Shown here: positions 13,370 to 64,000 of the stretch, piece after piece | Position numbering within the stretch: position 1 is the first letter of the stretch | How the letters are laid out: the number at the start of each line of letters is the position of its first letter | Source: Entomortierella parvispora E1425 | Taxonomy: Eukaryota > Fungi > Mortierellomycota | Reading direction: 5' to 3' | Assembly: GCA_020891255.1 (NCBI GenBank) | Contig: BQFW01000008.1 | Coordinates: 682,001 to 746,000, forward strand | Length of the DNA stretch: 64,000 nt | Made by a program: the position numbers and the translations under genes | The notes under the pieces: model-generated | Databases searched by the model: none | What the model was told of the DNA's origin: nothing | Seen by the model: only the letters and a program-made list of their open reading frames with translations

Positions 13370-13576
13370 TTAGAGGACAGAGGGACCGCGGATACCAATG
13401 GCGCCCATGTCCTTGAGAAGCGCGAGCTCAACAGCCTTTTCGCGAGACACTTGCGCACTTTGACTGGAAGCAGATCGGGAGACATCCATAGAGGCACGAG
13501 GGGAGTGGGCTGGGGTCGAGGCAGCAGAGGAGGGCGAAGAGGCGGTCATGTTCTGGGAAGACTTGAAGAGAGACAT
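13370..13576 (-). CDS. Microprotein family, divergent member (68 aa, MSLFKSSQN...STPAHSPRASM...GPSVL)
   Basis: Same N-terminal FK and TPxxSPRxS motifs and the helical SREKAVELA segment; TATAAAA ~140 nt upstream. Confidence 0.75.
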   Translation of the reverse strand: MSLFKSSQNMTASSPSSAASTPAHSPRASMDVSRSASSQSAQVSREKAVELALLKDMGAIGIRGPSVL

Positions 13577-14361
13577 GGTTGTGGTTACTTGTTTTCTTGG
13601 GGGTAGTGGCGGATGTGGTGACGATCGTTTGAGGAGATGGCGAAGAGCTTGCTTGAGGTTTTGTATTATCAAACGAGAGAAGAGAAAATCGAACAGAAGG
13701 AAATGGGTCGACTTTTTATACCTTCTTGCAGCTGCGGGTTCTCTTTCATGCTTATCAATGAGCTTGAACGTAATTCAGGCACCGCTGGCCGTCAAAAGAC
13801 GTTCTGCTCTGCATTGTTGTTGAGCATTGACCCATGCGTTGACTCGGTATGAGGCAATTTGGCTATCAACCGCGCACAAAGGGTTTTCATATCTAGAAGT
13901 TCAGTCGGCAATTGAAGACGCAGAAGGCTCTCGGTGACGTTTTTTTCATTTTTTTTTTTTTTTTTTAGAGTTGAGGACAATCGGCGATGTCCTTTCCTCG
14001 GTTGGATGCAACAAACAAATTGGTCCATGCCATGACGGGTTGCAAGAGATGTTGTCAACTTCGCTAGTGGGCATGAGATGCAGGACATCCATACAGCTGA
14101 GGGGAGGATTCATGGACAACCGCTGATGAAAACAACCCCAGCAATTGAAGGATAGATGCGACATTCTGGAGGACAAGAGACTGGATGACGGTCAAATTCA
14201 AAAGGAAGGTTGATGTAGTTGGCAATGCAGAAAGTGTTGTTTTTATTCACAGTGGGGTATTGCTCATGCAAGATGGTATTGTACAAAAGTGATGATTGAA
14301 ATGCAAGAGGGTATGAAGGGGTTTGACGTGAGGCAATCCTCAGAGAGGAAGAGAGTCCTCT

Positions 14362-14559
14362 TTACATGCGGATGTTGCCGTGGAAGATGGTCGAGCTAGT
14401 AGCACCGAGAGACTTTTCCATGGCAATCTGGATTGCTTGTTCCCTGGTCATCTTGGTGGGCTGGGCTGGGCGAGCTCCATCAACTGAGGAGCGAGGAGTC
14501 TGAGCTGGCGTAGAGGCAGCAGAGGCAGACTGGTTCTTGGACGACTTGAAGAAAGACAT
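14362..14559 (-). CDS. Microprotein family, type A (65 aa, ends STIFHGNIRM)
   Basis: ACAACC-ATG context, TATA box upstream, near-identical to many copies. Confidence 0.85.
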   Translation of the reverse strand: MSFFKSSKNQSASAASTPAQTPRSSVDGARPAQPTKMTREQAIQIAMEKSLGATSSTIFHGNIRM

Positions 14560-15151
14560 GGTTGTAGTTGTTTGCTTGCTTGGGCGAAGGTTGCTGTTGA
14601 GGCGGGTTGTTGTGGCTTGGTTGCTGGCTTGTTGAGTGAAGAGAAGAGGGATGAGCGAGGATGGTCCTTGCATTTATACGAGTGGCCCACGCTTTCTTAA
14701 TCTCGCAGGGTCTTCCAGAAGAAACGCACTTCCATGTTGACTTCCATACTTGGCATCCTTGTGCGTCCCAACCTTGAATTTCTATTTCTTGGCTTTCTCC
14801 GCCTCTGCGGCAACGGCCAAGAGGGACAAAAGAGAGTAAACATTTCATCATTGAGAGCAGCGCGGCAAAAAGCGAAAAGCAAAAATTGAGGGACCGATCT
14901 GGACCCGATGGATTGTTCCTGGAAAAGACGAAGAAAACATGGCCCTTGCTCCAACGAGGGTGCATCCGTGCTGCGGTTGTTCAATTGAGCCAAGATTGGG
15001 ATTGCGGATCGGAGGAGAGAAAAGGTATAAAAGAGATCCTCACCCCCCCCGCTCCTTTTTTTTTCTTCACTCACACAACCAAGCAACAACCAAGCAAACA
15101 ACAACTCGCCTCAACAGCAACCCTCACCCAAGCAAGCAAACAACTACAACC
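14560..15151. promoter_or_regulatory. Bidirectional spacer, short class S
   Basis: TATAAATGCAAGG faces the left gene and TATAAAAGAGATCC the right gene; GCCAAG at 14749, 14788, 14816, 14989. Confidence 0.7.
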
Positions 15152-15349
15152 ATGTCCTTCTTCAAGTCTTCCAAGAACCAGTCTGCCTCTGCTGCTTCGA
15201 CCCCAGCTCAGACCCCTCGCTCTTCAGTTGATGGAGCTCGCCCAGCACAGCCCACCAAGATGACCAGGGAACAAGCAATCCAGATCGCCATGGAAAAGTC
15301 TCTCGGTGCCACCAGCTCGACTGTCTTCCATGGAAACATCCGCCTGTAA
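15152..15349 (+). CDS. Microprotein family, type A (65 aa, ends STVFHGNIRL)
   Basis: Family sequence; protein identical to the copies at 17671 and 25325. Confidence 0.85.
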   Translation: MSFFKSSKNQSASAASTPAQTPRSSVDGARPAQPTKMTREQAIQIAMEKSLGATSSTVFHGNIRL

Positions 15350-15920
15350 AGAGAACTCATTTCTCTCCGAGGATCGCCTCACGTCAAGTCCCAAATCATA
15401 CCCTCTTGCATTCCAACCATCACTTCTGTACAACATCATCTTGCATCGGCAATAGCCCTTCGTGAATAAAAACACCTCTGCATTGCCAACTACAAACCTG
15501 CCTGTTTCGTGTTGAATATGACCTTCATCCAGTCTTTTGCATTTCCGTGATTTTTTTCTCCACAAGTACATCGCATCCACAATCCAATTGCTGCGTGCAA
15601 TCTTCATCCGTGTCTTCCTCATCTCTTCCCTTGGTAATCACATTCACAACCATCGAGTTAATTGAGAGATCTCAACAATGGCACTATGATACTTGAACAG
15701 CAACTGTTCTGTACGTGGCACTTGCATGTCTTTGATATATTTTCCACCTAATGGCTGCCAACACCACCTTGGTCATTTGAGAGAAAGTTTTTTTTTTTTT
15801 TGTGAGATCAAGTCGCACTTTTATTGTTCGGTCTTGAAGATGCAGGATATGGTACAGTTGGTATTAAGAGGTAGATGCAATATGGAGTATTAAGGTGGGA
15901 GAGTCAACTGGTCATCCAAT

Positions 15921-16109
15921 TTAAAGGTGGATGTTGCCAGACATGGCAATGGGGCCAATGGACTTGCTCACGGCCATCTTGATAGCGTCTTCCTTGGTCA
16001 TCTTGGTGGGTTGGGCTGGGCGAGATCCATCAACCGAGGTGCGAGGAGTCTGGGCTGGGGTGGAAGCAGCAGAGGCGGACTGGTTCTTGGAAGACTTGAA
16101 GAAAGACAT
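15921..16109 (-). CDS. Microprotein family, type B (62 aa, ends PIAMSGNIHL)
   Basis: Family sequence; protein identical to the copy at 24561. Confidence 0.85.
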   Translation of the reverse strand: MSFFKSSKNQSASAASTPAQTPRTSVDGSRPAQPTKMTKEDAIKMAVSKSIGPIAMSGNIHL

Positions 16110-16898
16110 GGTTGTGTTTTTTTATTTGTTTGGGTGAGTGGAGGTTGCTGTTGAGGCAGATTTTGTTGCTTGGTTGTTGCTTGGTTGGTTGAGTGAAGAA
16201 AAGAGGAAGGTGGTGGCAGACAGCGTCGTTGTATTTATACAGGATCAACTTCTTCTAAATCCGTCTTGGCCATGGATCCTTCCAGCAAACAGTCGAAGGC
16301 ACTTTGCCTTCTTTCCAATCTTGGCATGCTTGGGTGGTTCGTGTGAATTTCACTCAACCCTAAAAAAAAAACACCGACTCCGCCTGCCGATGGCCGTTGC
16401 GCGCCTCTCCAAAGTCCGCGCAGCACGGATGCCCCCGCACCCGTCGACGTTCGTGCCCAAATCAGTCGCACAACCGACGGCCAAGAACGGGGAGATCATT
16501 TCGAGGGAAAAGGAGGAAGGAAGGGAGAATAAGCATTTCATCATTGAGAGCCACGCAGCAGAAATGAATTTCAGACACCGATCTGACGAGAGATGACCTG
16601 TGAGGCATTTGTCATAGTCGACTCTGCTTCGATGGATTTTTCTGCTGCGACGTTCCTTGGAGAAGGAGGCGGGGTGAACATGGCCCATGCTCAAATGAGG
16701 GGTTCATCCGTGGCGCGGCAGTTCATCTTCACCAAGAATAGTCCCGTGGATCGGGATCACACAAAAGTATAAAGACCTTCATCCCCCTCTCTGGTTTTTT
16801 TTTCTTCACTCACAACAAACATCACTCAGCAACTCCCAAACAACCAAGCAACCAAGCTCTCTCAAGAACTTCCACCCAACCAACCAACAACCATAACC
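16110..16898. promoter_or_regulatory. Bidirectional spacer, long class L
   Basis: TATAAATAC faces the left gene and TATAAAGACC the right gene; GCCAAG at 16265, 16320, 16480. Confidence 0.7.
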
Positions 16899-17087
16899 AT
16901 GTCCTTCTTCAAGTCCTCCAAGAACCAGTCTGCCTCTGCTGCTTCCACCCCAGCCCAGACTCCTCGCACCTCGGTTGATGGATCTCGCCCAGCCCAACCC
17001 ACCAAGATGACCAAGGAAGACGCTATCAAGATGGCCGCGAGCAAGTCTATTGGCCCTATTGCCATGTCTGGCAACATCCACCTTTAA
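16899..17087 (+). CDS. Microprotein family, type B (62 aa)
   Basis: Family sequence with TATA box and A/C-rich leader. Confidence 0.85.
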   Translation: MSFFKSSKNQSASAASTPAQTPRTSVDGSRPAQPTKMTKEDAIKMAASKSIGPIAMSGNIHL

Positions 17088-17670
17088 ATTGGATGACCAG
17101 TTGACTCTCCCACCTTAATACCCCATATTGCATCTACCTCTTAATACCAACTGTACCATATCCTGCATCTTCAAGACCGAACAATAAAGGCGCGACTTGA
17201 TCTCATAAAAAACCCCTTTTTCTCTCAGATGACTAATGTGATGTTGGCAGCCACTACTTGGAAAGTAATGATAAGACATGCAAGTCCCACGTAGAAAACA
17301 ATTACTTTTCACGTATCGTAGTGCTACTGTCGAGATCTCACAATCGCCAATGATTAACTCGATGGTTGAGAATTTGCAGTTACCAAGGGAAGATGAGGAC
17401 GATACGGATGAAGATTGTTTGTAGGCAGCAATTGAATTGTGGATGTGATGCGCCTGTGGAGAAAAAACTCGCGGAGAAGCAAAAGGTTGGAAGAAGGTCA
17501 TATTCCAAATAAAACAGGCTGGTTTGTAGTTGGCAATGCAAGGGTGTTTTTATTCACGAAGGGCTATTGCTCATGCAAGATGATGTTGTACAAAAGTGAT
17601 GGTTGGAATGCAAGCGGGTATGATTTTGGGTCTTGACGTGAGGCGATCCTCGGAGAGAAATGAGTCCTCT

Positions 17671-17868
17671 TTACAGGCGGATGTTTCCATGGAAGACAGT
17701 CGAGCTGGTGGCACCGAGAGACTTTTCCATGGCGATCTGGATTGCTTGTTCCCTGGTCATCTTGGTGGGCTGGGCTGGGCGAGCTCCATCAACTGAAGAG
17801 CGAGGGGTCTGAGCTGGGGTCGAAGCAGCAGAGGCAGACTGGTTCTTGGACGACTTGAAGAAGGACAT
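17671..17868 (-). CDS. Microprotein family, type A (65 aa)
   Basis: Family sequence. Confidence 0.85.
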   Translation of the reverse strand: MSFFKSSKNQSASAASTPAQTPRSSVDGARPAQPTKMTREQAIQIAMEKSLGATSSTVFHGNIRL

Positions 17869-18490
17869 GGTTGTAGTTGTTTGCTTGCTTGGGTGAGGGT
17901 TGCTGTTGAGGCGAGTTGTTGTTGCTTGGTTGTTGCTTGGTTGTGTGAGTGAAGAAAAAAAAGGAGCGGGGGGGGTGAGGATCTCTTTTATACGTTTTCT
18001 CTCCTCCGATCCGCAATCCCAATCTTGGCTCAATTGAACAACCGCAGCACGGATTCATCCTCGTTGGAGCAAGGGCCATGTTTTCTTCGTCTTTTCCAGG
18101 AACAATCCATCGCTTCCAAATGCCTCACTCATCGTTTGTCAGATCGGTCCCTTAATTTTTGCTTTTCGCTTTTTGCCGCGCTGCTCTCAATGATGAAATG
18201 TTTACTCTTTGGCGTCTTTTGTCCCTCTTGGCCGTTGCCGCAGAGGCGGAGAAAGCCAAGAAATAGAAATTCAAGGTTGGGACGCACAAGGATGCCAAGT
18301 ATGGAAGTCAACATGGAAGTGCGTTTCTTCTGGAAGACCCTGGGAGATTAAGAAAGCGTGGGCCACTCGTATAAATGCAAGGACCATCCTCGCTCATCCC
18401 TCTTCTCTTCACTCACACAACCAAGCAACACCAAGCAACAAAATCTGCCTCAACAGCAACCTCCACCCACTCACCCAAACAACTACAACC
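17869..18490. promoter_or_regulatory. Bidirectional spacer class S, inverted relative to 14560-15151
   Basis: Reverse-complement homolog of the first S spacer. Confidence 0.7.
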
Positions 18491-18688
18491 ATGTCTTTCT
18501 TCAAGTCTTCCAAGAACCAATCTGCCTCTGCTGCCTCCACCCCAGCCCAGACTCCTCGCACCTCAGTTGATGGAGCTCGCCCAGCCCAGCCCACCAAGAT
18601 GACCAGGGAACAAGCAATCCAGATTGCCATGGAAAAGTCTCTCGGTGCTACTAGCTCGACCATCTTCCACGGCAACATCCGCATGTAA
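18491..18688 (+). CDS. Microprotein family, type A (65 aa)
   Basis: Family sequence; the 5' leader is of the kind otherwise found on L spacers (mosaic). Confidence 0.85.
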   Translation: MSFFKSSKNQSASAASTPAQTPRTSVDGARPAQPTKMTREQAIQIAMEKSLGATSSTIFHGNIRM

Positions 18689-22042: not shown

Positions 22043-22240
22043 TTACATACGAATGTTGCCGTGAAAGATGGTCGAGCGGGTGGCACCGAGAGACTTTTCC
22101 ATGGCAATCTGGATTGCTTGTTCCCTGGTCATCTTGGTGGGCTGGGTTGGGCGAGCTTCATCAACTGAGGAGCGGGGGGTCTGAGCTGGCGTAGAGGCTG
22201 CAGAGGCAGACTGGTTCTTGGACGACTTGAAGAAAGACAT
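22043..22240 (-). CDS. Microprotein family, type A (65 aa, ends RSTIFHGNIRM)
   Basis: Family sequence. Confidence 0.85.
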   Translation of the reverse strand: MSFFKSSKNQSASAASTPAQTPRSSVDEARPTQPTKMTREQAIQIAMEKSLGATRSTIFHGNIRM

Positions 22241-22863: not shown

Positions 22864-23055
22864 ATATCTTTCTTCAAGTCCTCCAAGAACCAGTCTGCTT
22901 CCGCTGCCTCTACCCCAGCTCAGACTCCCCGCTCCTCCATGGATGCCTCTCGTATCGGTGCACAAAAGATCAAGATGACCAAGGAAGAAGCTATCAAGAT
23001 GGCAGTGAGCAAGTCCATTGGCCCCATTGCCATGTCTGGCAACATCCACCTTTAA
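22864..23055 (+). pseudogene. Microprotein family, type C copy with start codon ATG>ATA
   Basis: ACAACC-ATA-TCTTTCTTCAAG in place of ATG; an out-of-frame upstream ATG at 22805; the rest of the frame is intact to GNIHL-stop. Confidence 0.75.
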
Positions 23056-30209: not shown

Positions 30210-30240
<31 letters not shown>

Positions 30241-34435: not shown

Positions 34436-34714
34436 TCAGCGCATCCTGGCTACAGTCATGGCCTGCATGTGTCCAACAGTATTCCGCAGGAGGGCGACGT
34501 CCAGGGCGTGATCGTGCGAGATGCTGTTCTTGTAACTGATGGTTGTGAGATCCAAGGCAAGATCTGGAGACAACTGGACCGATGATCTGGGTGTGCTAGG
34601 GGCCGAATGGGCCTTGTTCTGATTCTTCTTTCCGACGGAGGGCGAGGGCGATGGCGATGGCGACGGCGAGGGCGACGACGACAAGTAAGAGGTGACGTTT
34701 TTGAAGAGGGGCAT
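34436..34714 (-). CDS. Microprotein family, divergent member (92 aa, MPLFK...(SP)n...SAPSTPRSSV...ISHDHALDVALL)
   Basis: Shares MxxFK, TPRSS and the helical segment with the 13370 member; head-to-head with 37202. Confidence 0.6.
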   Translation of the reverse strand: MPLFKNVTSYLSSSPSPSPSPSPSPSVGKKNQNKAHSAPSTPRSSVQLSPDLALDLTTISYKNSISHDHALDVALLRNTVGHMQAMTVARMR

Positions 34715-44428: not shown

Positions 44429-45021
44429 AGAGGACTCATTTCTCTCCGAGGATCGCCTCACGTCAAGTCCCAAATCATACCCTCTTGCATTCCAACTATC
44501 ATTTTTGTACAATATCATCTTGCATCAGCAATAGCCCTATGTGAATAAAAAAACACATTTGCAATGCCAACTACAAACTAGCCTGTTTTATTTGGAGTAT
44601 GACCTTCCTTCTTCCAACCTTTTGCTATTCCGTGAGTTTTTTCTCCACAAGCACATCACATCCACAATTCAATTGCTGCCTAGAATCTTCATCCGTGACG
44701 TCCTCGTCTCTTCCGTTGGTAACTGCACATTCACAACGGCCGACTTAATCACTAGCGATTGAGACATCTCGACAGTAGAACTATGATACTTGAACAGTAA
44801 TTGTTTTCTACGTGGGACTTGTATGTCTTATCATTGCTTTCCACGTAATGGCTTCCAACACCACATAGGTCATCTGAGACAAAAAAGGTTTGTTTATGAG
44901 ATCAAGTCGCGCTTTTATTGTTCGGTCTTGAAGATGCAGGATATGGTACAGTTGATATTTGATATTAAGAGGTAGATGCAGTATGGAGTATTAAGGTGGG
45001 TGAGTCAACTGGTCATCCAAT

Positions 45022-45210
45022 TTAAAGGTGGATGTTGCCAGACATGGCAATGGGGCCAATGGACTTGCTCACGGCCATCTTGATAGCGTCTTCCTTGGTC
45101 ATCTTGGTGGACTGGGCTGGGCGAGCTGCATCAACTGAGGTGCGAGGGGTCTGAGCTGGGGTCGAGGCAGCAGAGGCGGACTGGTTCTTGGACGACTTGA
45201 AGAAGGACAT
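45022..45210 (-). CDS. Microprotein family, type B (62 aa)
   Basis: Family sequence; mirror of 49275. Confidence 0.85.
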   Translation of the reverse strand: MSFFKSSKNQSASAASTPAQTPRTSVDAARPAQSTKMTKEDAIKMAVSKSIGPIAMSGNIHL

Positions 45211-45959
45211 GGTTATGGTTGTTGGTTGGTTGGGTGGAAGTTCTTGAGAGAGCTTGGTTGCTTGGGAGTTGCTGAGTGATGTTTGTTGTGAGTGAAGAAA
45301 AAAAAACCAGAGAGGAGGGATGAGGGTCTTTATACCTTTGTGTACTCCCGATCCACTGGACTATTCTTGGCGAAGTTGAACTGCCGCGCCACGGGTGATG
45401 CATCCCTCATTTGAGCATGGGCCACGTTCTTCCAGCAGCCTTCTCCAAGGAACGTCGCAGCAGAAAAATCCATCGAAGCAGAGTCGACCAACAACAAATG
45501 CCTCACAGGTCATCTCTCGTCAGATCGGTGCCTGAAATTCATTTCTGCTGCGTGGCTCTCAATGATGAGATGCTTATTTTCCTTTTCCCTTGGCCGTCCG
45601 TTGTGCGACTGATTTGGGCACGAACGTCGACGGGTGCGGGGGCATCCGTGCCGCGCGGACTTTGGAGAGGCGCGCTGCGGCCATCGGCAGGCGGAGTCGG
45701 TGTTTTTTTTAGGGTTGAGTGAAATTCACACGAACCACCCAAGCATGTCATTGATTGGAAAGGAGGCAAAGTGCCTTCGACTGTTTGCTGGAAGGATCCA
45801 TGGCCAAGACGGATTTAGAAGAGGTTGATCCTGTATAAATACAACAACCCTCTCTGCCACCTTTCTCTTTTCTTTACTCACTCAACCAGCCAAGCAACAC
45901 CAAGCAACAAAATCTGCCTCAACAGCAACCTCCACCCACTCACCCAAACAACTACAACC
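45211..45959. promoter_or_regulatory. Bidirectional spacer class L, inverted, with an internal deletion
   Basis: Reverse complement of 48526-49274; ~35-40 bp shorter than the array 1/2 L spacers. Confidence 0.7.
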
Positions 45960-46157
45960 ATGTCTTTCTTCAAGTCTTCCAAGAACCAGTCTGCCTCTGC
46001 TGCCTCCACCCCAGCCCAGACCCCTCGCACCTCAGTCGATGGAGCTCGCCCAGTCCAGCCCACCAAGATGACCAGGGAGCAAGCAGTCCAGATCGCCATG
46101 GAAAAGTCTCTCGGTGCTACCCGCTCGGCCATCTTCCACGGCAACATCCGCATGTAA
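45960..46157 (+). CDS. Microprotein family, type A (65 aa, ends RSAIFHGNIRM)
   Basis: Family sequence; mirror of 48328. Confidence 0.85.
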   Translation: MSFFKSSKNQSASAASTPAQTPRTSVDGARPVQPTKMTREQAVQIAMEKSLGATRSAIFHGNIRM

Positions 46158-46745
46158 AGAGGACTCTCTTCCTCTCCGAGGATGGTCTCACTTCAAGCCC
46201 CTTCATACCCTCTTGCATTTTAATCATCACTTTTGTACAATACCATCTTGCATGAGCAATAGCCTAATGTGAATAAAACAATTCCTGCGTTGCCAACTAC
46301 AAAACCACCCTGTTCGACTGTTGATATGATCCTCGACCTCTCTCTTGCTTTTCTATGAGCTCTTATCCGAGAGCATGCCGCATCCTTCCTTCAGTTGCTG
46401 GGGATGTTTTCATCAGCGGCTGTCCAAGCATCCTCCCTTTGCAATACAAGTACATGCGTCACGACCAAGTTGAAAAGGGCGCTTCAGAGGTCTTGCTAGC
46501 GGCGATGATATACTGAATGAGCAATTGCTTCGTACGCGATGTTCAAGTACTTTTGACAGCGCTCAACGTTGTTATAATAATAAAGACCACCTGGATTGCA
46601 TGTTCGTTCATCGGGAGAAAGGTTTTGTGTGTGATCAAGACGCGATTTTATTGTTTGGTCATGAAGATGCAAGATATGGTACAATGGATATTATGAGATA
46701 GATGCAAGAAGGGTATGAAAGGAGTGAGTCAATTCGCGGTCCGAT

Positions 46746-46937
46746 TTAAAGGTGGATGTTGCCAGACATGGCAATGGGGCCAATAGACTTGCTCACTGCC
46801 ATCTTGATGGCTTCTTCCTTGGTCATCTTGATCTTTTGTGCACCGGTACGAGAGGCATCCATGGAGGAGCGGGGAGTCTGAGCTGGGGTAGAGGCAGCGG
46901 AAGCAGACTGGTTCTTGGAGGACTTGAAGAAGGACAT
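46746..46937 (-). CDS. Microprotein family, type C (63 aa, SMDASRTGAQKIKMTK...GNIHL)
   Basis: Family sequence; mirror of 47548. Confidence 0.85.
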   Translation of the reverse strand: MSFFKSSKNQSASAASTPAQTPRSSMDASRTGAQKIKMTKEEAIKMAVSKSIGPIAMSGNIHL

Positions 46938-47547
46938 GGTCGTGGATGTGTGTTTGCTTGGGTGAGGGTTGCTGCTGAGGCGAGTTGTTGTTACTTGGCT
47001 GTGTGAGTGAGGAAAAAAAAGGAGCAGGGGGTGAGGATCTCTTTTATACCTTTTCTCTCCTCCGACCCGCAATCCCAATCTTGGCTCAATTGATGCACCG
47101 CAGCACGGATGCATCCTCGTTGGAGCAAGGGCCATGTTTTCTTCGTCTTTTCCAGGAACGATCCATCGGGTCCAAATGCCTCACTCATCATTTGTCAGGT
47201 CCCTTAATTTTTGCTTTTCGCTTTTTGCCGCGCTGCTCTCAATGATGAAATGTTTACTCTTTGGCGTCTTTTGTCCCTCTTGGCCGTTGCCGCAGAGGCG
47301 GAGAAAGCCAAGAAATAGAAATTCAAGGTTGGGACGCACAAGGATGCCAAGTATGGAAGTCAACATGGAAGTGCGTTTCTTCCGGAAGACCCTGGGAGAT
47401 TAAGAAAGCGTGGGCCACTCGTATAAATGCAAGGACCATCCTCGCTCATCCCTCTTCTCTTCACTCAACAAGCCAGCAAGCAACAACCAAGCAACAACAA
47501 CTCGCCTCAACAGCAGCCCTCACCCAAGCACACAAACAAACACAACC
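46938..47547. promoter_or_regulatory. Bidirectional spacer class S (inverted), forming the loop of the array 3 palindrome
   Basis: Asymmetric S spacer between two identical genes. Confidence 0.7.
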
Positions 47548-47739
47548 ATGTCTTTCTTCAAGTCCTCCAAGAACCAGTCTGCTTCCGCTGCCTCTACCCC
47601 AGCTCAGACTCCCCGCTCCTCCATGGATGCCTCTCGTACTGGTGCACAAAAGATCAAGATGACCAAGGAAGAAGCCATCAAGATGGCAGTGAGCAAGTCT
47701 ATTGGCCCCATTGCCATGTCTGGCAACATCCACCTTTAA
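47548..47739 (+). CDS. Microprotein family, type C (63 aa)
   Basis: Family sequence. Confidence 0.85.
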   Translation: MSFFKSSKNQSASAASTPAQTPRSSMDASRTGAQKIKMTKEEAIKMAVSKSIGPIAMSGNIHL

Positions 47740-48327
47740 ATCGGACCGCGAATTGACTCACTCCTTTCATACCCTTCTTGCATCTATCTCATAATATCCA
47801 TTGTACCATATCTTGCATCTTCATGACCAAACAATAAAATCGCGTCTTGATCACACACAAAACCTTTCTCCCGATGAACGAACATGCAATCCAGGTGGTC
47901 TTTATTATTATAACAACGTTGAGCGCTGTCAAAAGTACTTGAACATCGCGTACGAAGCAATTGCTCATTCAGTATATCATCGCCGCTAGCAAGACCTCTG
48001 AAGCGCCCTTTTCAACTTGGTCGTGACGCATGTACTTGTATTGCAAAGGGAGGATGCTTGGACAGCCGCTGATGAAAACATCCCCAGCAACTGAAGGAAG
48101 GATGCGGCATGCTCTCGGATAAGAGCTCATAGAAAAGCAAGAGAGAGGTCGAGGATCATATCAACAGTCGAACAGGGTGGTTTTGTAGTTGGCAACGCAG
48201 GAATTGTTTTATTCACATTAGGCTATTGCTCATGCAAGATGGTATTGTACAAAAGTGATGATTAAAATGCAAGAGGGTATGAAGGGGCTTGAAGTGAGAC
48301 CATCCTCGGAGAGGAAGAGAGTCCTCT

Positions 48328-48525
48328 TTACATGCGGATGTTGCCGTGGAAGATGGCCGAGCGGGTAGCACCGAGAGACTTTTCCATGGCGATCTGGACT
48401 GCTTGCTCCCTGGTCATCTTGGTGGGCTGGACTGGGCGAGCTCCATCGACTGAGGTGCGAGGGGTCTGGGCTGGGGTGGAGGCAGCAGAGGCAGACTGGT
48501 TCTTGGAAGACTTGAAGAAAGACAT
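48328..48525 (-). CDS. Microprotein family, type A (65 aa)
   Basis: Family sequence. Confidence 0.85.
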   Translation of the reverse strand: MSFFKSSKNQSASAASTPAQTPRTSVDGARPVQPTKMTREQAVQIAMEKSLGATRSAIFHGNIRM

Positions 48526-49274
48526 GGTTGTAGTTGTTTGGGTGAGTGGGTGGAGGTTGCTGTTGAGGCAGATTTTGTTGCTTGGTGTTGCTTGGCTGGT
48601 TGAGTGAGTAAAGAAAAGAGAAAGGTGGCAGAGAGGGTTGTTGTATTTATACAGGATCAACCTCTTCTAAATCCGTCTTGGCCATGGATCCTTCCAGCAA
48701 ACAGTCGAAGGCACTTTGCCTCCTTTCCAATCAATGACATGCTTGGGTGGTTCGTGTGAATTTCACTCAACCCTAAAAAAAACACCGACTCCGCCTGCCG
48801 ATGGCCGCAGCGCGCCTCTCCAAAGTCCGCGCGGCACGGATGCCCCCGCACCCGTCGACGTTCGTGCCCAAATCAGTCGCACAACGGACGGCCAAGGGAA
48901 AAGGAAAATAAGCATCTCATCATTGAGAGCCACGCAGCAGAAATGAATTTCAGGCACCGATCTGACGAGAGATGACCTGTGAGGCATTTGTTGTTGGTCG
49001 ACTCTGCTTCGATGGATTTTTCTGCTGCGACGTTCCTTGGAGAAGGCTGCTGGAAGAACGTGGCCCATGCTCAAATGAGGGATGCATCACCCGTGGCGCG
49101 GCAGTTCAACTTCGCCAAGAATAGTCCAGTGGATCGGGAGTACACAAAGGTATAAAGACCCTCATCCCTCCTCTCTGGTTTTTTTTTCTTCACTCACAAC
49201 AAACATCACTCAGCAACTCCCAAGCAACCAAGCTCTCTCAAGAACTTCCACCCAACCAACCAACAACCATAACC
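48526..49274. promoter_or_regulatory. Bidirectional spacer class L
   Basis: Mirror of 45211-45959. Confidence 0.7.
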
Positions 49275-49463
49275 ATGTCCTTCTTCAAGTCGTCCAAGAA
49301 CCAGTCCGCCTCTGCTGCCTCGACCCCAGCTCAGACCCCTCGCACCTCAGTTGATGCAGCTCGCCCAGCCCGGTCCACCAAGATGACCAAGGAAGACGCT
49401 ATCAAGATGGCCGTGAGCAAGTCCATTGGCCCCATTGCCATGTCTGGCAACATCCACCTTTAA
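49275..49463 (+). CDS. Microprotein family, type B (62 aa)
   Basis: Family sequence. Confidence 0.85.
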   Translation: MSFFKSSKNQSASAASTPAQTPRTSVDAARPARSTKMTKEDAIKMAVSKSIGPIAMSGNIHL

Positions 49464-50137
49464 ATTGGATGACCAGTTGACTCACCCACCTTGAAACTCC
49501 ATACTGCATCTACCTCTTAATATCAAATATCAACTGTACCATATCCTGCATCTTCAAGACCGAACAATAAAAGCGCGACTTGATCTCATAAACAAACCTT
49601 TTTTCTCTCAGATGACCAATGTAGTGTTGGCAGCCATTAGCTGGGAAGTTATGACCAAGACTTGCAGGTGTCACGCAGAAAACAATAACTCGTCCAGCAT
49701 CATGGTGCCATAGTGCTGCTGTCGACGTCTCTCAATTACCTAGATTAAGTCGGCCGTTGTGAATTTGTGATAATCACGAGAGAGACGAGAACGACATGAT
49801 GATTGTACACAGCACTTGAGTTGTGGATGAGCTGTATCTGTGGAGAAGAGCTCTTGGGAATTCAAATAACTGGATGAAGGTCAAATTGAGACCTCGATGG
49901 GTACATCATGACACTTGAAGGGTGCTTGATTACTGCGTATACTTCTCTTTCGTTTCTTTGACAGCACTTTACAACCAAAACCCCATAGACCCCACATTTC
50001 GATAGAGATAGTTGATGAGATCAAGTCGCGATTTTATTGCTCGGTCTTGAAAATGCAAGGTATAGTACAATTGATGTTATGAGATGCAAGATGGGAGTGA
50101 GCGGGTATGAGATGAGTGGGGCAGTTGGCGGTCCGAT

Positions 50138-55529: not shown

Positions 55530-55695
55530 CCCATCAATTGACCGAGCCAAGATGACAAGGAGATGGAGTCACTGCTTGCATCTGATGACCCTGCACAACC
55601 AAACATTTACAGCCGGCCGGGCCATTTAACATCGCACGAGCCCAGGTCCCATTCATTCATTCTTCTTTAGTTAGTATTATTATTGTCATAAAATA

Positions 55696-58600
55696 TCATT
55701 CAGCTACAACATGGTCGTTGGCCTCGACTTCCTCCATATCCACAGTATCGTAGCTATCGCTTTTTCTGAGAAAACATGCTATAGCACTCTCTGCCATTTT
55801 GTGCGCGCCAACAGTTTGAAGGTCAACTACCACGGATGGAGAAGGCCGAGTGTCTTGCTTGGATGCCCAAAGGATTCCACAGAACTGGAGATTGTCTCTG
55901 ACAAGCTCAACATCCTCTTTCGTGGATGGTTTTTTGTGAGCAGTGCTGTTGTACTTGGTTTCTATCTCCCGTTCGAAATTACGTGCAATGGTTTGAAATA
56001 TCTCGACGTTTGTTGAGATTTGTTCGCGAAGATAGTCCCAGCTTGCGTTTGGCCCTTTCGCTGCATGAGTGGCTTTGAGGAGGAAGTTGATGATTTCTTG
56101 GTACATGTCCGTTGGCATCCATGCTTGAGGAATGCCTTTAGGGTTCACCAGCATGCTTGAAAGGACCCTGTGTTCCCATTCACGCGTCCACAGGTGGCGC
56201 ATGCCGTGGAGAAAATCGTAGTAGCTCAAGGGCATATTTGGAATTGCCTCCGCCGTGCATCATCAATGCCACGGTTGGTAGCACACATCTTATCCGCCCA
56301 AGATCGCCAGCCTTAATAGCAGCAGAGAGTTCGATGAAAACGATCATGTCTCGGAGGAAGAGAAGAGCATTGATATCTGCTGGAGTGCAGGGCCGGCCAT
56401 TGAGCAAGGGATTGGCATGCTGCAGACTAGCTATGGCGTAAATGACAAGATCAACGAATCTTGTCATGTCAGACTCCACTGAGGTATGAAGATCTTCCCA
56501 GAGTACCATTGACATTGCGTCGAAAACAATCTTCAGCAGTTCACTGGTTGGCTTGTACTCCGGTTTATCCGTGTTAAAGCCTTTACTGGCCAATAGGGAA
56601 ATGAATGATGCAAGTGAGCCTGGGGTATTGGCATCGGCGCCAAGATGTGTCTTGTAGATCGTGGAGCAAAGTGTCATTTGGAGATGGAAGAGCTGAAACG
56701 TAGGATGTACCCAACCAAGACTGCCGAATGGATCCGACTCAACCATGCGGTGTACCTTGAGAGATAAAAGTCTAGAGACAGTCATCTGATCACCGGCCAC
56801 TATGATGTCCCTGGTGGTCTTGCTGAACCATTCATCGCTTAAGCCGAGATCTATCTTTGTTATGTTTTCCAGCACTGCGAGATTTCCGGCAATAGTCGAC
56901 TCATCGATCTTCATGGTTGGCAATGGAAAAGTTTTCGTCTTAACAACCTTCAGTACGTCAATGGCCGGCATGGGAATCACGCAAACACTGGGTGATCGAG
57001 GCAAAAACTGCGAAATGGCAGTCGACAGATGTGTGCGGCAGGCAGCCCTAGTCATGGTGCGGTCGGTGCTTGTGGGGAAAAAAATGCTGGCGCTTGGCTC
57101 TGGCCTGTCCACTCTGAAGCAAACCATTGGGGATGATCGAGGTATTTCAGCACTCCTGGAGCTCCCGAGATTTGAGCTGTCGGGAATCAGAATCACGGTA
57201 GCAGCTGTGCCGTTGTCGAACGTGTCTCTTTTTCCTACTCTCTGGTGATGGTGCCTTGTGGCAATGTTGATGTTGTCGTATACAATGTAAAAGTCGTTGT
57301 TGAGGACTGCCACCTTCACCCTCTCCTGTGCGTCTTTGGTCAAGGCCTTCAATGCCCTGTGAATCTGATCATATGACACGCAAAGTCCAAGAGCCGACAA
57401 AGTCTCTAAAACTCGTCTGGGAGCTCCCAGGCAGTGAAGATAGATGCCCATTACCATCTGAAAAGCATTGCATTGCTGGGATCTCAAGAACATGAGCATA
57501 GCAGAGATGCAGCCACGAACAGAGCTGGGTTTTTCGACCGCGCCTGCGAGCAGGTGTAGCGCTTCCCACAGTTTCTTCATCATTGTTGCCGATGTTGTCA
57601 CTGCCGTTGTTGACGGTGTTATCGCCGTTGCTGTCGATGTCGTTGTCGCCGCTATTGTCGCTGTTGTCGCTGTTGCTCTCGGTGTCGTTCTCACTGTCGT
57701 TGCCGTTGTTGTTGCCTTCGTTTACTCTGGTGCTACCATCGCCACTGTTCGTACCATTTCCCTTGCTAAGCATGCCGTCCAAAAGTCGTGTCAAAAAAGA
57801 AGCTTCGCCGGCGTAAGAGTCGAGAAACCCGTTCCTGAGGATCTTATCGATATTTTCCTCCGACATTCTATTGTGCGGGAATCGGTAGGCTGGGTGTGGG
57901 CCATCGTCACCTACGACGCCGTTCTTGAGGCGATCAAGCTCCCGTTTAGTCCTTGAGACAACGACGTCTACAGCGCTGTTCACAAATGGGGCATCCCATT
58001 CTTTGATCTTGCGTAACTTTTGGCTCCAAATTTTGATAACGCGACGAGGACCGTCTTTGTGATAGAATTGATGAGTCCAGCGCTTGATGTTTTCATCTTG
58101 AGAGTTAAACAGCTTCTCGAAGAAGGCGGGAAGTGAAAGCTGTTGTTCCCTGATGTAGTTAAGAATCATTGCAACTTTGTGGGTAGAGGAATGCTAAAAA
58201 GAAAAAATAATTGTTAGACGCCTGTGGGAGTGACATATTGCTGGTTTCTTTGGACAACCGGTCTTCACATACATGCGGCTTCCTTGTTGATCCGGGCATT
58301 CGATCCTCTCCATTGGTCGCTCTGAGTGTGGGGGGAATCGGGCATGCACATCTATACGTAATTCGTAATTCACTTGAGAGGTAATTCATAAATTACGATA
58401 AGGATGTTTTCGAAACCATGTGCTGAATTTACCTGCAGTGTCGATGAGTTGAACTGCTCCTCCATGTCGGCCGTTAAAGTCCTAATCCTATCACTGAATT
58501 TCACTGCATGTTAGAAATTTGCGTAAACCTGGGGGCAACTAAAGTTGCGACAGGGTAGGCAGGTTGGGGTATCTCATGCTTACGCGAACTGAGGGGTGCT

Positions 58601-59500
58601 CAGATTCCTAGATCGTCGCGAGTTTTTTCTTGTGGGGGTCCTCATGTAATCGTTCCCAGAAACCCATATCATCGGCGTCTCTGTTCGATTACTTCCTAAT
58701 CTCCGAAGCCAGAATGGGCTATCGAATGGCTCTCCATCAGTGTTGTCACAGAAAGGATCGAGCAGAGACTCCTCTGACGCATGCTTGGGTCGCGGTGATT
58801 CATCTCCAATGCTGGGTCGCGGCGACTCTTTTCCAATGTTGGGTGGCGTCGAATTTTTTCCAATGTTGAATTGCGTTGATCCTCCAATGTACGCAGCCTG
58901 AGAAGTCGGAGAAAGAGCCTGTGCCTCCATGACAAAGGGTAAAGGTTGGGCCATATCGGTAGCACCAGAACCATTGGTAGTTCCCTAATCGATATGAATG
59001 GGAGGAGGTGGATACATCTGTTAGAAAAGAAAAACGCGAGCAGCACATATTTTTTAACGATTTTTTTCATACTTGGTTGGCCACAATTGGTGACTGTATG
59101 AATCTTGGCGTTTGTAAGGTTTGTGAGGTGCGCGGGGTTCGTGGAGTTCGTGGTGCTCGTGGTGCTCGTGGGGTTTGTGTTGTTTGCGGGGTTCGCGGAG
59201 GAGCACCTGGGGAATCAAGACGAAATCGTCCCTCACCCTATTGTAAATCACAGAGTTAGAAGAGGCCACACCAGGAAGAGGCCACCAGGCACCACATCAA
59301 GCTACTCACCTTGGTGCTACGCGATCTTCTCGGCGTTCCCGGGATATCTTGATCAGATTTGCTAAGAGCATCATGACTACAACAGAAAATATGAAGAGAT
59401 GAAGAAAAATAGAGCAGATGGACGCGTGGGCGACTCTGAGCATCATGGACACCCGAGACGCGTCTCCTCACCTCTGCTCGATTGGTCTTTTGCTTGCCAT
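55696..59500 (-). CDS. Academ-type transposase (two apparent frameshifts; middle exons uncertain)
   Basis: Motifs RSQQCNAFQ, LGLCVSY, YDNINI..H..QR....FDNGTAAT, GDQMT..R, FHLQM and DMYQEIIN (candidate D-D-E with H). The first exons mirror those of the helicase inside the TIR. Confidence 0.8.
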
Positions 59501-59861
59501 CTTTGTCATTTAATCAGATGAAGGGTATAAAGAAGAGGTGGCAGGAGCTGAATGCAAGATCGGAACGCGGGGTTTATGAAAGAAAGTGGTGGCATTGAAA
59601 ATGAAAAAATGGAAGAAATTAACCCCATTCAAGCCGGGCGACGAGCGATGGCATGGCTGCATGGCTGGCATTACTCTCACTATTTTATTATTATTAGAGT
59701 GAATTTATTTAAAGTTTTTAAATTACACTATTTATCAGAGAATTTTTTTTCCTTTTTTGGACGAAAAAATTATTTTGGGTCATCCATAGGAAAGGGTGAG
59801 ATTTGCGCCCAGCCCCTCTGAAGTGAAGGAGTGAGCAAAGAGGGGCTGGGTTCAGAGCTTC
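58840..59861 (-). repeat. Right terminal inverted repeat (1022 bp)
   Basis: Mirror ORFs sum to 112123 (e.g. 52302+59821, 52652+59471). Confidence 0.92.
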
Positions 59862-60528: not shown

Positions 60529-61772
60529 GGTTGAGAGACTTGTTTTTGCTTGTTGCTGTTGAGGCTGTTGTTTGCTGTTGAGGCTGTTGTTTGCTGTTGA
60601 ATGGAATGAAGAGTTCTGTAGGCGAGGAACCGGGGCCTTTTATACCTTCCAAGAGCTGGACGTTGCGAGCTGCGGCAATTGCCTGGGCATCCAGGACACA
60701 CGATAGCTTCGCCTGCGGCATATCTCCAACGCTTCCAGAACGAGAAGACATGAATGGACGTCAATGGCATTGGCGGTGCGTTGGCACGGGGATTTTTTTT
60801 TGTTTGTTTTGTTGCCTTCCTTTCTTGGCACACATTTGAGATTTTTGCAACCCTAAAAAGTCTCCGTTGCGCACGAATGTACCAGGGAAATTAAACTTTT
60901 TCTTTTCGGTTTTTCCTGGTCTGGGTGTCTTGGCAGGGTTGGCATGCCGCGGGGGTGGAGGTAAACAAAGTGTCATTGTCATTTAGAGGAGGACTTACAT
61001 CCTGGGTGGTTGAAGTGATCGTCTCCTGCGGAACCGAGATCTCTCGCCGCTGTTCTTCGACTGAATAAAACTGCTACAGGAGAGGGTGGATGACCATCAT
61101 GCTTTGCCAACTTTCCTCCTAGTTTCTGACGTATAGGCAGACTTGGCAGTGGCGAGGGCGATACCGCAAGCGCGCCGCCTTCCGAGCCTTGGCCGCCTGA
61201 TGTGTTGTGCGTACCATCTGGAATGTGCCAGATGCCTTTTTATTTTTGTTTTTACACGCAAAGGCAAATGGGGTAGGAGTAAAAAAAAAAAAACATTCAT
61301 CAATTGAAGTCGACTGGCGGAGGAAAGGGTGGGGAAGCGTGAACAGCAGTTTTCTTCATATTTCATAGTTGATAATATGGTCTGCTTCTGTCTGTAGGTA
61401 CCTTTTTGCTCTTCTTCATCGAGTCGGTAGGATATAGCTCAACAAGTACAGAAGAAAACACACAATAGGGAGACGGCATGCAAAGAAATCCGGAGGCACG
61501 CGTTCCAAACAGGCTGTCAGTTCTTCCGGCATTCTCCATTGCGGTGTGATGCAAATAGAGTGATCTCAATTGCTTGCAACAGAACCAATACAACATTATG
61601 AACACAGTCCCTTCAATTGCTGGTGGCGTGAAAGAGAGCGAATATAATACTTGATATGTTTTTTTTTATTGTCGAAAGGTGGTATGGCCACATGTGGTTT
61701 GTGCGGTGCAGAGCCGTGTCGAAATCAAGTTGACCGAAAGGTGAACTCCGAATGAAGACCTTTCGACCTTTC

Positions 61773-61991
61773 TTAGGCGATGAAAGGTCCCATGCTAGAA
61801 CTTGCCATGTTGTTCTTGGTGAGCAACTCCACAGCTTGCTCGGGTGTCAGCAAGGTCCCATTGGTGGTGGTGGTTTTTGGACAGAGACGCTCCAGCGACG
61901 ACCGAGAAGGGGAGGCCATGGCTCTTGCAGCGGTCGAAGAGTTGCCACATTGTCTCTTGGATGCGGAAGACGAGAACTTAAAGAAAGGCAT
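61773..61991 (-). CDS. Microprotein family, divergent member (72 aa, MPFFKFSSS...LTPEQAVELLTKNNM...GPFIA)
   Basis: MPFFK start, SPSRSSL and TPEQA helix; TATAAG upstream. Confidence 0.7.
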   Translation of the reverse strand: MPFFKFSSSASKRQCGNSSTAARAMASPSRSSLERLCPKTTTTNGTLLTPEQAVELLTKNNMASSSMGPFIA

Positions 61992-63851
61992 GGTACAAAA
62001 GGTATGGCTTTTTTGGCTTCGAAGAAAACGATGTGGTGGGTTGCTTGGTTGAGCGGTGCGTTTAGTTGCTTGGATGGCGGACGAAGAGTGCGGCCGCGGT
62101 CGTCTTATATGCGCAAGCTTGGTGTTGGCCAATACCATCGTCTTCTTGGTTGGCAACAAACCCCCAGCCAGCGCGTGCAATGTACATCACCAAGTGAGGT
62201 AACGCTTTTGCCGAGCAATTAGTAAGGGCCCTTGACCCATGAAAGGACACCAAATCTGACTAAGAACAAATCAGGGGACGGTCAAGACAACGAGGCGTAG
62301 AATACGCGCGTGCTTCCATGGACGTGGAATGCGTCACACAGCACTCTTTTGCCTTCTATAGTTGGCAATCAAAAAATTCAACCTTGCATCCACGCATCGG
62401 TCATCAACTTCCTTTTCGGCAGAGGTTGCCGCCGAGATGTTTTTCCATCATGCCCTTCTCGTAGAGGTATTTTTGATGCAAAATATAGTCCCATTGCTTG
62501 TCTAATACGATGTTTTCGTCGGCATGGTCTAGCCGAGTCGCCATATCTAGAATCGTCTTTTCTTTTTAGAGCTCTCCAGTTGTTTTCAAGCATCTGGGCA
62601 GAATCAAAGATGATCTTCCAGCCAACCAAGGCTAGTTTATTGCAGTTACTCCAGGCAGTTGGGAGAACGCGAGTAACAGTCTGTTGCCCGCGAGTCTTTG
62701 AGATAAGAGTCAGCAATAGAGAATAGTGGCTCAACAATCGGCGGTGCATGTTGAACTGGCGCTCGGCTCTATTCTGATTGATTTTTACAACTGCCTTTCC
62801 GTCCGTCCACTGATCGCCATTCGCCTCCACACGATAGCGTAGACGATTTTTCCCCATCCAAGCGACAAAGCAGAGCACCGTGCAGAGGTGCTGGGACTTG
62901 CTGTTGAATTGGGCGTACTGACCTAAAGAGCGGAGAAATCTCCGATTCAAAAGAAAGGCCTCAAAAAAAGCCTATGGAAAAATCAAAATCATTGGAAAAT
63001 AAGCGTTGGACCAACGGAGGGACCTGCATCGAGCATTCTGTGCGGACTCAAAGGTCCAGAGGAATGGATGGTCCTAAAAGAGGACCCGTTCATATTTGTG
63101 GTTCTGCTTGCTCGCAGCAGGGGATTGCTCGGCTTTCTTCATGGCAGTTGTCACGGAGAGTTGCCACCAGTGCGCCAGTGCGCCACCAAATTTGTAGAAG
63201 AAAAAAGACCCCTCTCACATCGATCAATTGCGACACGCAGGTCAATATCTGCCTTCTTTTGCTTCAAGGTCAGTCTGGTGGATAGCCCATCGTCCTCTCA
63301 AGCATTGTCTGTGACCAGCGCGGGGACATCTGATGCAGATAATCTTTGCGGCAAAATATCCATGCCCCGCTCAAGGTTACTTTCTCCTCAGCCAGCTGGC
63401 GGTGAACGTTCAGCCAAATAGATTTCGAGTCGGGGTAGAAAGGCGCTTGGGACTTTCTAACCCCTGTCATTGGTGATTTCTGCCCAAAGCGTTTTGAACG
63501 TTCAATCTTTTTTTGGGTGGACGGTCCACATCGTCTGGATAGCTTGCACGTTGGAGACTCGGACATCCTTTCTTGGTATTTTTGGGTGGGTGATCCTCCC
63601 CGCAATGGCAAAAGCAAAAAATGACGGCGCATTGACCCAATGCGAAGGTAGATGCGATAAAAACAGGGAAGCCTCTTTTGGTCGCGTCCCCAAATAAATA
63701 CCGGGTCCCTCCCCCTGTCTTTCTCTTCACTCAACAACCAAACACCAAAACCCCCCTCCTCCAACTTCTAACAAGACTCTCTCTCTTTCCTCGTACACTC
63801 AGAGACCTTCACACTTCCTCCACAAACAAAACCCCCTCACACACTCCAGCC

Positions 63852-64000
63852 ATGCCTTCCTTCCTCAAGAACTCCAAGAAGAACAAGACCGCTTCGGCCG
63901 ATAACACCCCTGCTCAGACTCCTCGTACTTCGATCCACTTGTCGAGCCCTTCAGACATGACTGGTATCCTCAATTACAAGACCAACTCTCACAAGCAGAT
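63852..64000 (+). CDS. Microprotein family, divergent member, truncated by the window end (MPSFLKNSKKNKTASADNTPAQTPRTSI...)
   Basis: TPAQTPRTS motif and A/C-rich leader; head-to-head with 61773. Confidence 0.75.
   Translation, partial: MPSFLKNSKKNKTASADNTPAQTPRTSIHLSSPSDMTGILNYKTNSHKQ

Follow-up and report, generated by a model that had tools for sequence, protein, structure and literature searches.

What is a single stretch of a fungal genome doing with 28 copies of one very short open reading frame (ORF), most of them set in arrays in which neighbouring copies alternate strictly between the two strands? The window analysed here, that is, the whole stretch of 64,000 nucleotides (nt) from contig BQFW01000008.1 of Entomortierella parvispora E1425, had been described in an initial annotation as carrying an amplified family of microprotein genes arranged in divergent pairs reminiscent of histone genes. 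This reading is supported by the analyses reported below. The copies most probably represent a family specific to the Mortierellaceae, composed of real, independently transcribed and intronless genes for a small disordered protein.

Searches with tblastn using two copies, together with a profile search of the six-frame translation of the window, recovered 28 family copies within 50 kb, namely 22 core copies in three arrays and six diverged singletons, which is the composition given by the initial annotation. Arrays 1 (14362-18688) and 2 (22043-26333) contain six core copies each and array 3 (43393-51192) contains ten, and the order is strictly -,+,-,+ in all of them (Table 1). The core copies encode 62-65 amino acids (aa). 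Their alignment confirmed the features first noticed, with the initial ~25 residues almost invariant, the C-terminal halves falling into about five subtypes and the C-terminus being GNI[RH][LM] in every case. As also noticed then, one of the 22 core copies is broken: at 22864(+) the start codon ATG is replaced by ATA, an additional ATG is found in the leader and the canonical AATAAA is missing. The family continues beyond the window, because a 67-aa member ending in GNIRI, EMPS_05908 (P0220), is annotated on the same 3.30-Mb contig about 18 gene models downstream of the window end.

The substitution pattern among the array subtypes was examined by Nei-Gojobori counts on a codon alignment, the comparison of nonsynonymous and synonymous divergence (dN and dS) that the initial annotation had proposed. 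In the first 26 codons, dS ranged from 0.24 to 0.88 and dN from 0 to 0.06; subtypes A and D, for instance, differed by seven synonymous and no nonsynonymous changes on 19.3 and 55.7 sites, respectively. Since dN is about zero despite such values of dS, the near-invariance of the N-terminus is due to selection on the amino-acid sequence, and it is not the product of recent copying or of a constraint at the DNA level. Over the C-terminal 36-40 codons the dN/dS ratio (omega) was about 0.2-0.8, mostly 0.3-0.5. It is clear that purifying selection acts over the entire ORF, although it is relaxed in the tail, and neutrality, with a ratio near 1, does not describe either half. Codon usage was strongly biased (AAG 99%, TTC 94%, AAC 94%, ACC 77% and CGC 74%), and the codons ATA, GTA, CTA, TTA, GGG and GCG were absent; a bias of this kind is usual in well-expressed genes. 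Additionally, Met is the first residue of all 158 full-length family domains, whose usual length is 60-70 aa.

Each copy is accompanied by its own set of expression signals. The sequence GTATAAA was located 110-145 nt upstream of the ATG in 22 of 23 copies, the exception being 51001(+), and AATAAA was found 72-135 nt after the stop codon in 22 of 23, the broken copy being the one without it. Apart from that same copy, the leaders between the TATA box and the start codon are free of ATG, and the start-codon context is nearly fixed as ACAACCATG. The leaders are also CA-rich, with 80% A+C and only 6.8% G in their last 90 nt vs. 24.7% G across the window. As every copy combines TATA box, leader, start context and AATAAA, each is therefore predicted to be a self-contained transcription unit of ~0.4-0.5 kb. 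The ORFs are contiguous and collinear with their homologs from other genera, and therefore they have no introns, in agreement with what had been proposed.

Head-to-head copies are separated by spacers of 592-789 nt and tail-to-tail copies by 529-680 nt. The initial annotation had ascribed to each head-to-head spacer a length of ~590-790 bp and two outward TATA boxes; the lengths were borne out, and two outward TATAAA boxes were present in 10 of the 11 shared spacers, with a single box in that between 50329 and 51001. Alignment of the upstream regions distinguished four promoter types. Type I always shares a spacer of about 590-640 nt with type II, and type III shares one of about 750-790 nt with type IV; these two kinds of spacer alternate along every array. 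The combination of promoter type and coding subtype is mosaic, subtype D lying behind a type I promoter in 47548(+) and behind a type II promoter in 46746..46937(-), and the exchange breakpoints are therefore placed near the start codons.

The divergent pair appears to be the conserved unit of amplification, and its layout recurs in Dissophora, Benniella and Gryganskiella, which upholds the histone-like geometry claimed at the outset. Dissophora ornata (locus L008) has eight copies, strictly -,+ repeated four times with a period of about 1.9 kb; Benniella sp. (L009) has 13 alternating copies with a period of about 1.75 kb, and Gryganskiella cystojenkinii (L010) has five alternating copies. In Mortierella sp. 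GBAus27b (L001), 12 copies occupy 21 kb, beginning -,+,-,+ and proceeding with runs on the same strand. TATA boxes were found at -108 to -155 in these other species, and short soil-metagenome contigs repeatedly terminate inside a head-to-head partner copy. The - and + copies of Dissophora form two separately supported clades; therefore, a pair of two different paralogs was duplicated as a unit. We also observed that the genes of each pair in this locus (L008, 3405-10171) are of two distinct paralog types, one of them without the STPAQ segment, in perfect alternation over the four repeats. Among the cases seen, this alone hints that a pair might have two components.

According to the mechanism that we propose, the ancestral unit would have been a divergent pair on one asymmetric spacer of ~0.6-0.8 kb with two outward TATA boxes, and the arrays would grow via duplication of whole pairs, a process that would automatically preserve the -,+ alternation. 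Strict alternation is thus explained most simply as a by-product of pair duplication, and selection on alternation itself is unneeded.

A candidate for a shared upstream control element was found in the divergent spacers. CTTGGCA was the sole 7-mer present in at least 75% of the divergent spacers of all six species groups examined; outside the window it was located at loci L001, L002, L005, L006, L008, L009 and L010. There is a single occurrence per spacer, at about 190-240 nt from one start codon or, in Dissophora, in a more central position (172-421 nt from the start codons), and it often lies within CC-W3-CTTGGCA or within a direct or inverted CTTGG repeat. In the window, 9 of the 22 CTTGGCA matches fall inside the 11 spacers, which amount to ~11% of the sequence; these spacers are paralogous, and the evidence for the element is its recurrence across genera.

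In E. parvispora, the arrays would also have grown by inverted segmental duplication. Array 1 is a 90% palindrome (14242-16178 vs. 18808-16839) and at the same time a 92% direct copy of array 2. In inverted orientation, array 2 in turn matches the left part of array 3 at 87%. The latter contains a palindrome whose arms share 99% identity, carry three genes each and both stop 65 nt upstream of the central start codons. The non-palindromic centre (47003-47482, 480 nt) includes both TATA boxes and constitutes a type II/I divergent promoter that is asymmetric. Because the arms end at that distance, the two central genes share coding sequence and leader and differ in promoter. The arms would be kept near-identical presumably by gene conversion from arm to arm.

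These traits are comparable to those of two known kinds of gene arrangement. As in the divergent H2A-H2B and H3-H4 histone pairs, the genes are intronless, encode small basic proteins and stand head-to-head on a spacer of ~0.6-0.8 kb with two outward TATA boxes; as in histone arrays, the pair is repeated as a unit and the copies are alike within a species. Unlike histones, the products have no histone fold (a single helix was predicted by AlphaFold2) and no Pfam match, the partners of a pair are usually of the same protein kind, Dissophora excepted, and only one fungal family is involved. On the other hand, the human Y palindromes P1-P8 and the X-linked cancer-testis families are ampliconic palindromes of mammalian sex chromosomes. 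Array 3 resembles them in having multi-copy genes in inverted repeats, with ~99% identical arms around a unique centre, a pattern that fits the preservation of gene copies by conversion between arms. It differs from them in its kilobase scale, as opposed to hundreds of kb, in its location on a fungal chromosome and in that the unique centre is the divergent promoter itself.

Regarding its distribution, a word-indexed search found 36 relatives, a HMMER profile search of 1.84 billion representatives yielded 164 clusters at 50% identity, and 230 clusters at 90% identity were obtained with a second profile, for which the most distant members were used. Every named match was a 'hypothetical protein' of the Mortierellaceae without a Pfam domain, from the genera Mortierella, Linnemannia, Podila, Entomortierella, Dissophora, Benniella, Gryganskiella, Haplosporangium, Lobosporangium, Lunasporangiospora and Actinomortierella. 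None of the 129 pattern matches in a prokaryote genome collection encodes a relative. The family is restricted to the Mortierellaceae, and the profile search, which the initial annotation had recommended, did not lead to any characterised family. In a maximum-likelihood tree the copies clustered by species, with 6 label changes vs. 30.6 for shuffled labels, which reflects either independent expansions or homogenisation within lineages. Since no genuine longer parent protein was found among the 1.84 billion representatives, the family seems unlike a truncated copy of a larger protein. Two candidates for such a parent were discarded: P0156, a kinase, is an annotation fusion in which the family ORF stops after 59 aa, and P0097, which is leucine-rich-repeat-like, is probably a fusion of the same kind and is unrelated to the 597-aa ORF next to array 1. 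No partner gene was conserved in the vicinity of the arrays either, the flanks differing between the species compared. A literature search for the motif TPAQTPR matched a single paper, which concerns human FACT and MCM in DNA replication and is unrelated to the family. With no Pfam family, no paper on its motif and only 'hypothetical protein' records, the family is undescribed. Amplified orphan families confined to one lineage, pair arrays of histone-like geometry and ampliconic palindromes each belong to a known kind. In a small-protein family of a fungus, however, conserved divergent-pair arrays on which palindromes are superimposed are unusual.

The deposited annotation of the locus deserves some comment, as the initial annotation had warned that such ORFs are easily missed; the four models described below bear out that these genes are poorly handled. 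Many members are in fact already recorded as 'hypothetical protein'; nevertheless, the four gene models seen at the locus are two N-terminally extended proteins (103 and 109 aa) and two chimeras. The 103-aa model starts at an ATG inside the TATA box, TATAAATG, and its N-terminal extension is almost certainly untranslated, because the upstream ATG lies within that box. For the 109-aa model, the start is the ATG of CAGTATAAATAC, which lies immediately next to the TATA box. Type I promoters carry an in-frame ATG within the TATA box (GTATAAATGCAAGG) at 14673(-), 18375(+), 26022(+) and others. In EMPS_05889 (44231-46157, +) and EMPS_05890 (48328-50329, -), one copy is spliced to the next copy on the same strand, and the predicted introns contain the opposite-strand copy. 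The label 'SMP domain-containing protein' that UniRef gives to EMPS_05890 could not be reproduced with Pfam-A, which gave no PF04927 match at E <= 10.

The products are basic (pI 10.3-11.6) with a mass of 6.5-7.1 kDa, and three parts are distinguished in them: a near-invariant N-terminal linear motif, a short amphipathic helix (K-M-T-x-[ED]-[EQ]-A-L) and a fast-evolving tail of 10-15 residues. The logo over 186 domains reads M-[SPA]-[FL]-F-K-S-[NS]-K-N-[KQ]-[ST]-A-S-A-A-x-T-P-A-Q-T-P-R-x-S-[MVI]-x-x-x-R-P ... K-M-T-x-[ED]-[EQ]-A-L ..., and the tail ends in a conserved short motif, for example GNI[RH][LM], GPxIR or GPSLL. Serine or threonine is found at positions 13, 17, 21 and 25 of the N-terminal motif, with Ser in 97% of the domains at both 13 and 25, Thr/Ser in 98% at 17 followed by Pro18 in 96%, and Thr/Ser in 97% at 21 followed by Pro22 in 97% and Arg23 in 93%. 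A single diagnostic tryptic peptide, NQSASAASTPAQTPR, is shared and covers S13, T17 and T21, S25 being in the next one. AlphaFold2 with the family alignment predicted a mostly disordered protein with one 12-residue helix at 39-50 (mean pLDDT 62, pTM 0.25). The grand average of hydropathy (GRAVY) was -0.38 to -0.53, and glycine accounted for 5-6% of the residues. The initial annotation had reported neither a signal peptide nor a known domain. In accordance with this, no hydrophobic N-terminal segment was found, the maximum Kyte-Doolittle value over nine residues being 0.28 in the first 20 aa, and hmmscan at E <= 10 of six window copies, five two-copy models and 32 members revealed no Pfam family at threshold. 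The weak matches to P33MONOX, Chon_Sulph_att, SUZ and UIM_2 were dismissed as due to low-complexity or very short profiles. As to the last of these, the E. parvispora copies fit the ubiquitin-interacting pattern I43-x-x-A46-x-x-x-S50, with a UIM_2 match of E = 0.043 and 14.4 bits vs. a cut-off of 21, but these positions are not conserved across the family (position 46 is Leu in 30%, Ala in 28% and Ile in 26%; position 50 is Ser in 37%).

How the fungus would use such a protein is the next question. It seems reasonably likely that the copy number, the TATA promoters, the G-poor CA-rich leaders and the codon bias serve bulk, burst-like production. Our preferred guess at its function is that of a disordered protein present in abundance and under phospho-regulation. 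The spacing of one Ser/Thr every four residues matches that of GSK3-type relay phosphorylation with proline-directed sites, and the loose TPxxS/T pattern of Cdc4/Fbw7 degrons also fits. On this basis the S13-T17-T21-S25 (TPxxTPRxS) segment might, very tentatively, be a site of multiple proline-directed and GSK3-type phosphorylation or a docking motif, an assignment that we hold to be possible rather than likely. In that case, the protein would work inside the cell by binding a conserved enzyme or adaptor or by competing with it. ARPP-19/ENSA/Igo1, PKI and PP1 inhibitor-1 and -2 are small heat-stable disordered phospho-regulators. The family resembles them in size, in the combination of disorder with a short helix and in its conserved S/T-rich linear motif, and differs in that it has no sequence similarity to them and none of their signature motifs, and in that they are single- or low-copy.

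Several points weigh against these proposals. Arg23, being basic, suits a classical Cdc4/Fbw7 degron poorly, the evidence for phosphorylation consists of the sequence pattern and its conservation, and a conserved disordered N-terminus would equally fit a targeting or processing signal. The same-strand runs of Mortierella sp. GBAus27b imply that alternation is not obligatory, and the statistics of codon bias and selection pool paralogs that are not independent. Finally, transcription of the copies is read from signals in the DNA. Four sequencing runs compared over 49000-51500 were DNA assemblies of other strains, with longest records of 15-74 kb, that matched only the conserved N-terminal coding part and are uninformative on expression. 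The genome of E. parvispora E1425 has been described (PMC8759367), and stranded RNA-seq of the strain is available as DRA013164.

Among the other explanations, it would be necessary to consider a bulk protectant of stress or dormancy, of the hydrophilin, LEA or conidiation-specific type, that floods the cell or the spores in cold, drying or sporulation and acts physico-chemically. Disorder with one helix, a GRAVY of -0.4 to -0.5, TATA-type promoters, high copy number and codon bias would all suit it. The UniRef label of one chimeric model, irreproducible as it is, points in the same direction, as do the nearest named Atlas clusters, which are the small fungal disordered DUF2406 (PF10295) and Con-8 (PF28480), at scores of 0.60-0.72 that are low against the 0.9 regarded as meaningful. 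Like LEA/SMP proteins (PF04927) the products are hydrophilic and disordered, and their (M/I)T..(E/Q)AL(E) helix bears a superficial resemblance to the start of the SMP repeat. However, the Pfam scans gave no match to SMP, DUF2406 or Con-8 at E <= 10 in the 32 members and five two-copy models, nor to SMP in the six window copies, and the glycine content of ~5% is under the usual hydrophilin criterion (>6%). Besides, a physico-chemical role would not require 25 near-invariant residues with dN ~0 vs. dS of 0.2-0.9. We therefore regard a protectant as unlikely. An organelle-targeted protein, with the N-terminal segment as a mitochondrial-type presequence and the helix and tail as the mature product, would account for the net charge of +3 of residues 1-26, their lack of Asp and Glu and their many Ser, Thr and Ala. 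Presequences are normally poorly conserved, however, and this segment is the most conserved part of the protein; prolines 18 and 22 and the low hydrophobicity also speak against an amphipathic targeting helix, which makes this explanation improbable.

The precursor of a processed peptide, be it a ribosomally synthesised and post-translationally modified peptide (RiPP), a pheromone or another signal, would have an invariant leader for a processing or export enzyme and a variable tail as the product. The many diversified paralogs, the invariant 'leader' and the varying tail ending in GNI[RH][LM], GPxIR or GPSLL agree with it, as does the CC-W3-CTTGG version that the promoter element shows in four lineages and that resembles a MADS-box site. 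The Amanita MSDIN precursors likewise form a large and clustered family, specific to one lineage, in which very short ORFs combine an invariant N-terminus with a more variable sequence after it. Nevertheless, the family has no hypervariable core of 6-10 residues flanked by prolines, a conserved helix stands between leader and tail, and only the last 10-15 residues vary, with omega below 1. It has no signal peptide and no Kex2-type dibasic repeats, and Pfam searches of window ORFs of at least 140 aa (20 larger ORFs, among which spliced genes could be missed) revealed no prolyl oligopeptidase, UstYa/DUF3328, methyltransferase or other tailoring enzyme. A precursor is consequently improbable. A bolder version, in which these would be unrecognised fungal signalling or processed-peptide precursors with a 25-residue leader, Mortierellaceae-specific machinery and active tails, and the arrays a device for diversity and dosage switched through CTTGGCA, for example in mating or in interaction with the endobacteria of the lineage, is of similarly low probability. 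Least credible of all is that the locus is non-genic, i.e., repeat DNA, part of a transposon or an artefact of the assembly in which short ORFs occur by chance. The dense repeat with palindromes in a Nanopore-based assembly and the transposon adjoining array 3 (52.2-59.9 kb) could raise this suspicion. Against it, changes in the N-terminal half are almost all synonymous; at least ten genera have retained the start Met, the length and the motif; every copy has promoter and polyadenylation-type signals; and the sequence is present in independent DNA runs, with the geometry recurring in assemblies of other species and in metagenomes. A transposon fragment had been named in advance as an outcome contrary to the microprotein reading; the units are accompanied by neither a transposase nor terminal repeats and contain only the small ORF, the DUF6589 and helicase ORFs being outside the arrays.

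Table 1. Family copies, example spacers, palindrome arms and CTTGGCA elements in the window.
Feature	Position	Strand	Remarks
Core, subtype A, 65 aa	14362..14559	-	promoter type I
Core, subtype A', 65 aa	15152..15349	+	promoter type II
Core, subtype B, 62 aa	15921..16109	-	promoter type III
Core, subtype B, 62 aa	16899..17087	+	promoter type IV
Core, subtype A', 65 aa	17671..17868	-	promoter type II
Core, subtype A, 65 aa	18491..18688	+	promoter type I
Core, subtype A, 65 aa	22043..22240	-	promoter type I
Broken core, subtype D	22864..23055	+	start ATA
Core, subtype C, 65 aa	23579..23776	-	promoter type III
Core, subtype B, 62 aa	24561..24749	+	promoter type IV
Core, subtype A', 65 aa	25325..25522	-	promoter type II
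Core, subtype A'', 65 aa	26136..26333	+	promoter type I
Core, subtype A, 65 aa	43393..43590	-	promoter type I
Core, subtype A, 65 aa	44231..44428	+	promoter type II; first half of chimeric model EMPS_05889
Core, subtype B2, 62 aa	45022..45210	-	promoter type IV; left palindrome arm
Core, subtype C, 65 aa	45960..46157	+	promoter type III; left palindrome arm
Core, subtype D, 63 aa	46746..46937	-	promoter type II; left palindrome arm
Core, subtype D, 63 aa	47548..47739	+	promoter type I; right palindrome arm
Core, subtype C, 65 aa	48328..48525	-	promoter type III; right palindrome arm
Core, subtype B2, 62 aa	49275..49463	+	promoter type IV; right palindrome arm
Core, subtype E, 63 aa	50138..50329	-	first half of chimeric model EMPS_05890
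Core, subtype E2, 63 aa	51001..51192	+	
Diverged singleton	13376..13576	-	profile E = 7e-15
Strongly diverged singleton, weakest member	34445..34714	-	SP-repeat insertion; profile E = 0.005
Diverged singleton, 67 aa	37202..37402	+	profile E = 2e-9
Diverged singleton, subtype F, 65 aa	60331..60528	-	TATA at -116, AATAAA at +135
Diverged singleton, 72 aa	61776..61991	-	profile E = 3e-6
Diverged copy running off window end	63852..64000	+	profile E = 7e-11
Example type I/II spacer, 592 nt	14560..15151		TATA 114 nt from left ATG and 126 nt from right; CTTGGCA at 14749
Example type III/IV spacer, 789 nt	16110..16898		outward TATA boxes; CCAATCTTGGCA element at 16320
Left palindrome arm, 2172 nt	44831..47002		ends 65 nt upstream of D(-) ATG
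Right palindrome arm, 2172 nt	47483..49654		
CTTGGCA in divergent spacers	14749, 16320, 18293, 22435, 23983, 25940, 43787, 47345, 50760		

In the surroundings of the arrays, Pfam matches among the 20 larger window ORFs were limited to GH18, helicase, DUF6589, a C2H2 finger and a weak fragment of a kinase. A transposon-like element (52262-59861) follows array 3 immediately downstream; it is bounded by inverted repeats of ~1165 nt with 95.6% identity (52262-53425 vs. 59861-58724) and contains a DEAD/Helicase_C ORF (54070-54765) and a DUF6589 ORF (56180-57694). Between arrays 1 and 2 there is an uninterrupted ORF of 597 aa (18932-20725, -) without a Pfam match, in which an F-box-like N-terminal stretch and a leucine-rich-repeat-like periodicity were seen by eye. 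A GH18 chitinase fragment (11024-11941, +; E = 7e-27) and a C2H2 zinc-finger ORF (28981-29694, -), with a Zap1_zf1-like match just below the Pfam cut-off, were also found; neither gene recurs beside the arrays of other species.

In soil, the Mortierellaceae rank with the most abundant fungi, and some of them produce lipids industrially or harbour endobacteria. For this group, the family constitutes one of the lineage-defining gene sets, with hundreds of members, up to dozens of them per locus, and no tie to a protein family described so far. The locus is in addition a compact natural example of how divergent pairs, tandem and inverted duplication and palindrome homogenisation keep a small-protein family intact. 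Were the invariant S/T-P motif to prove a phospho-switch or a leader for processing, a regulatory or signalling system specific to this lineage would be indicated.

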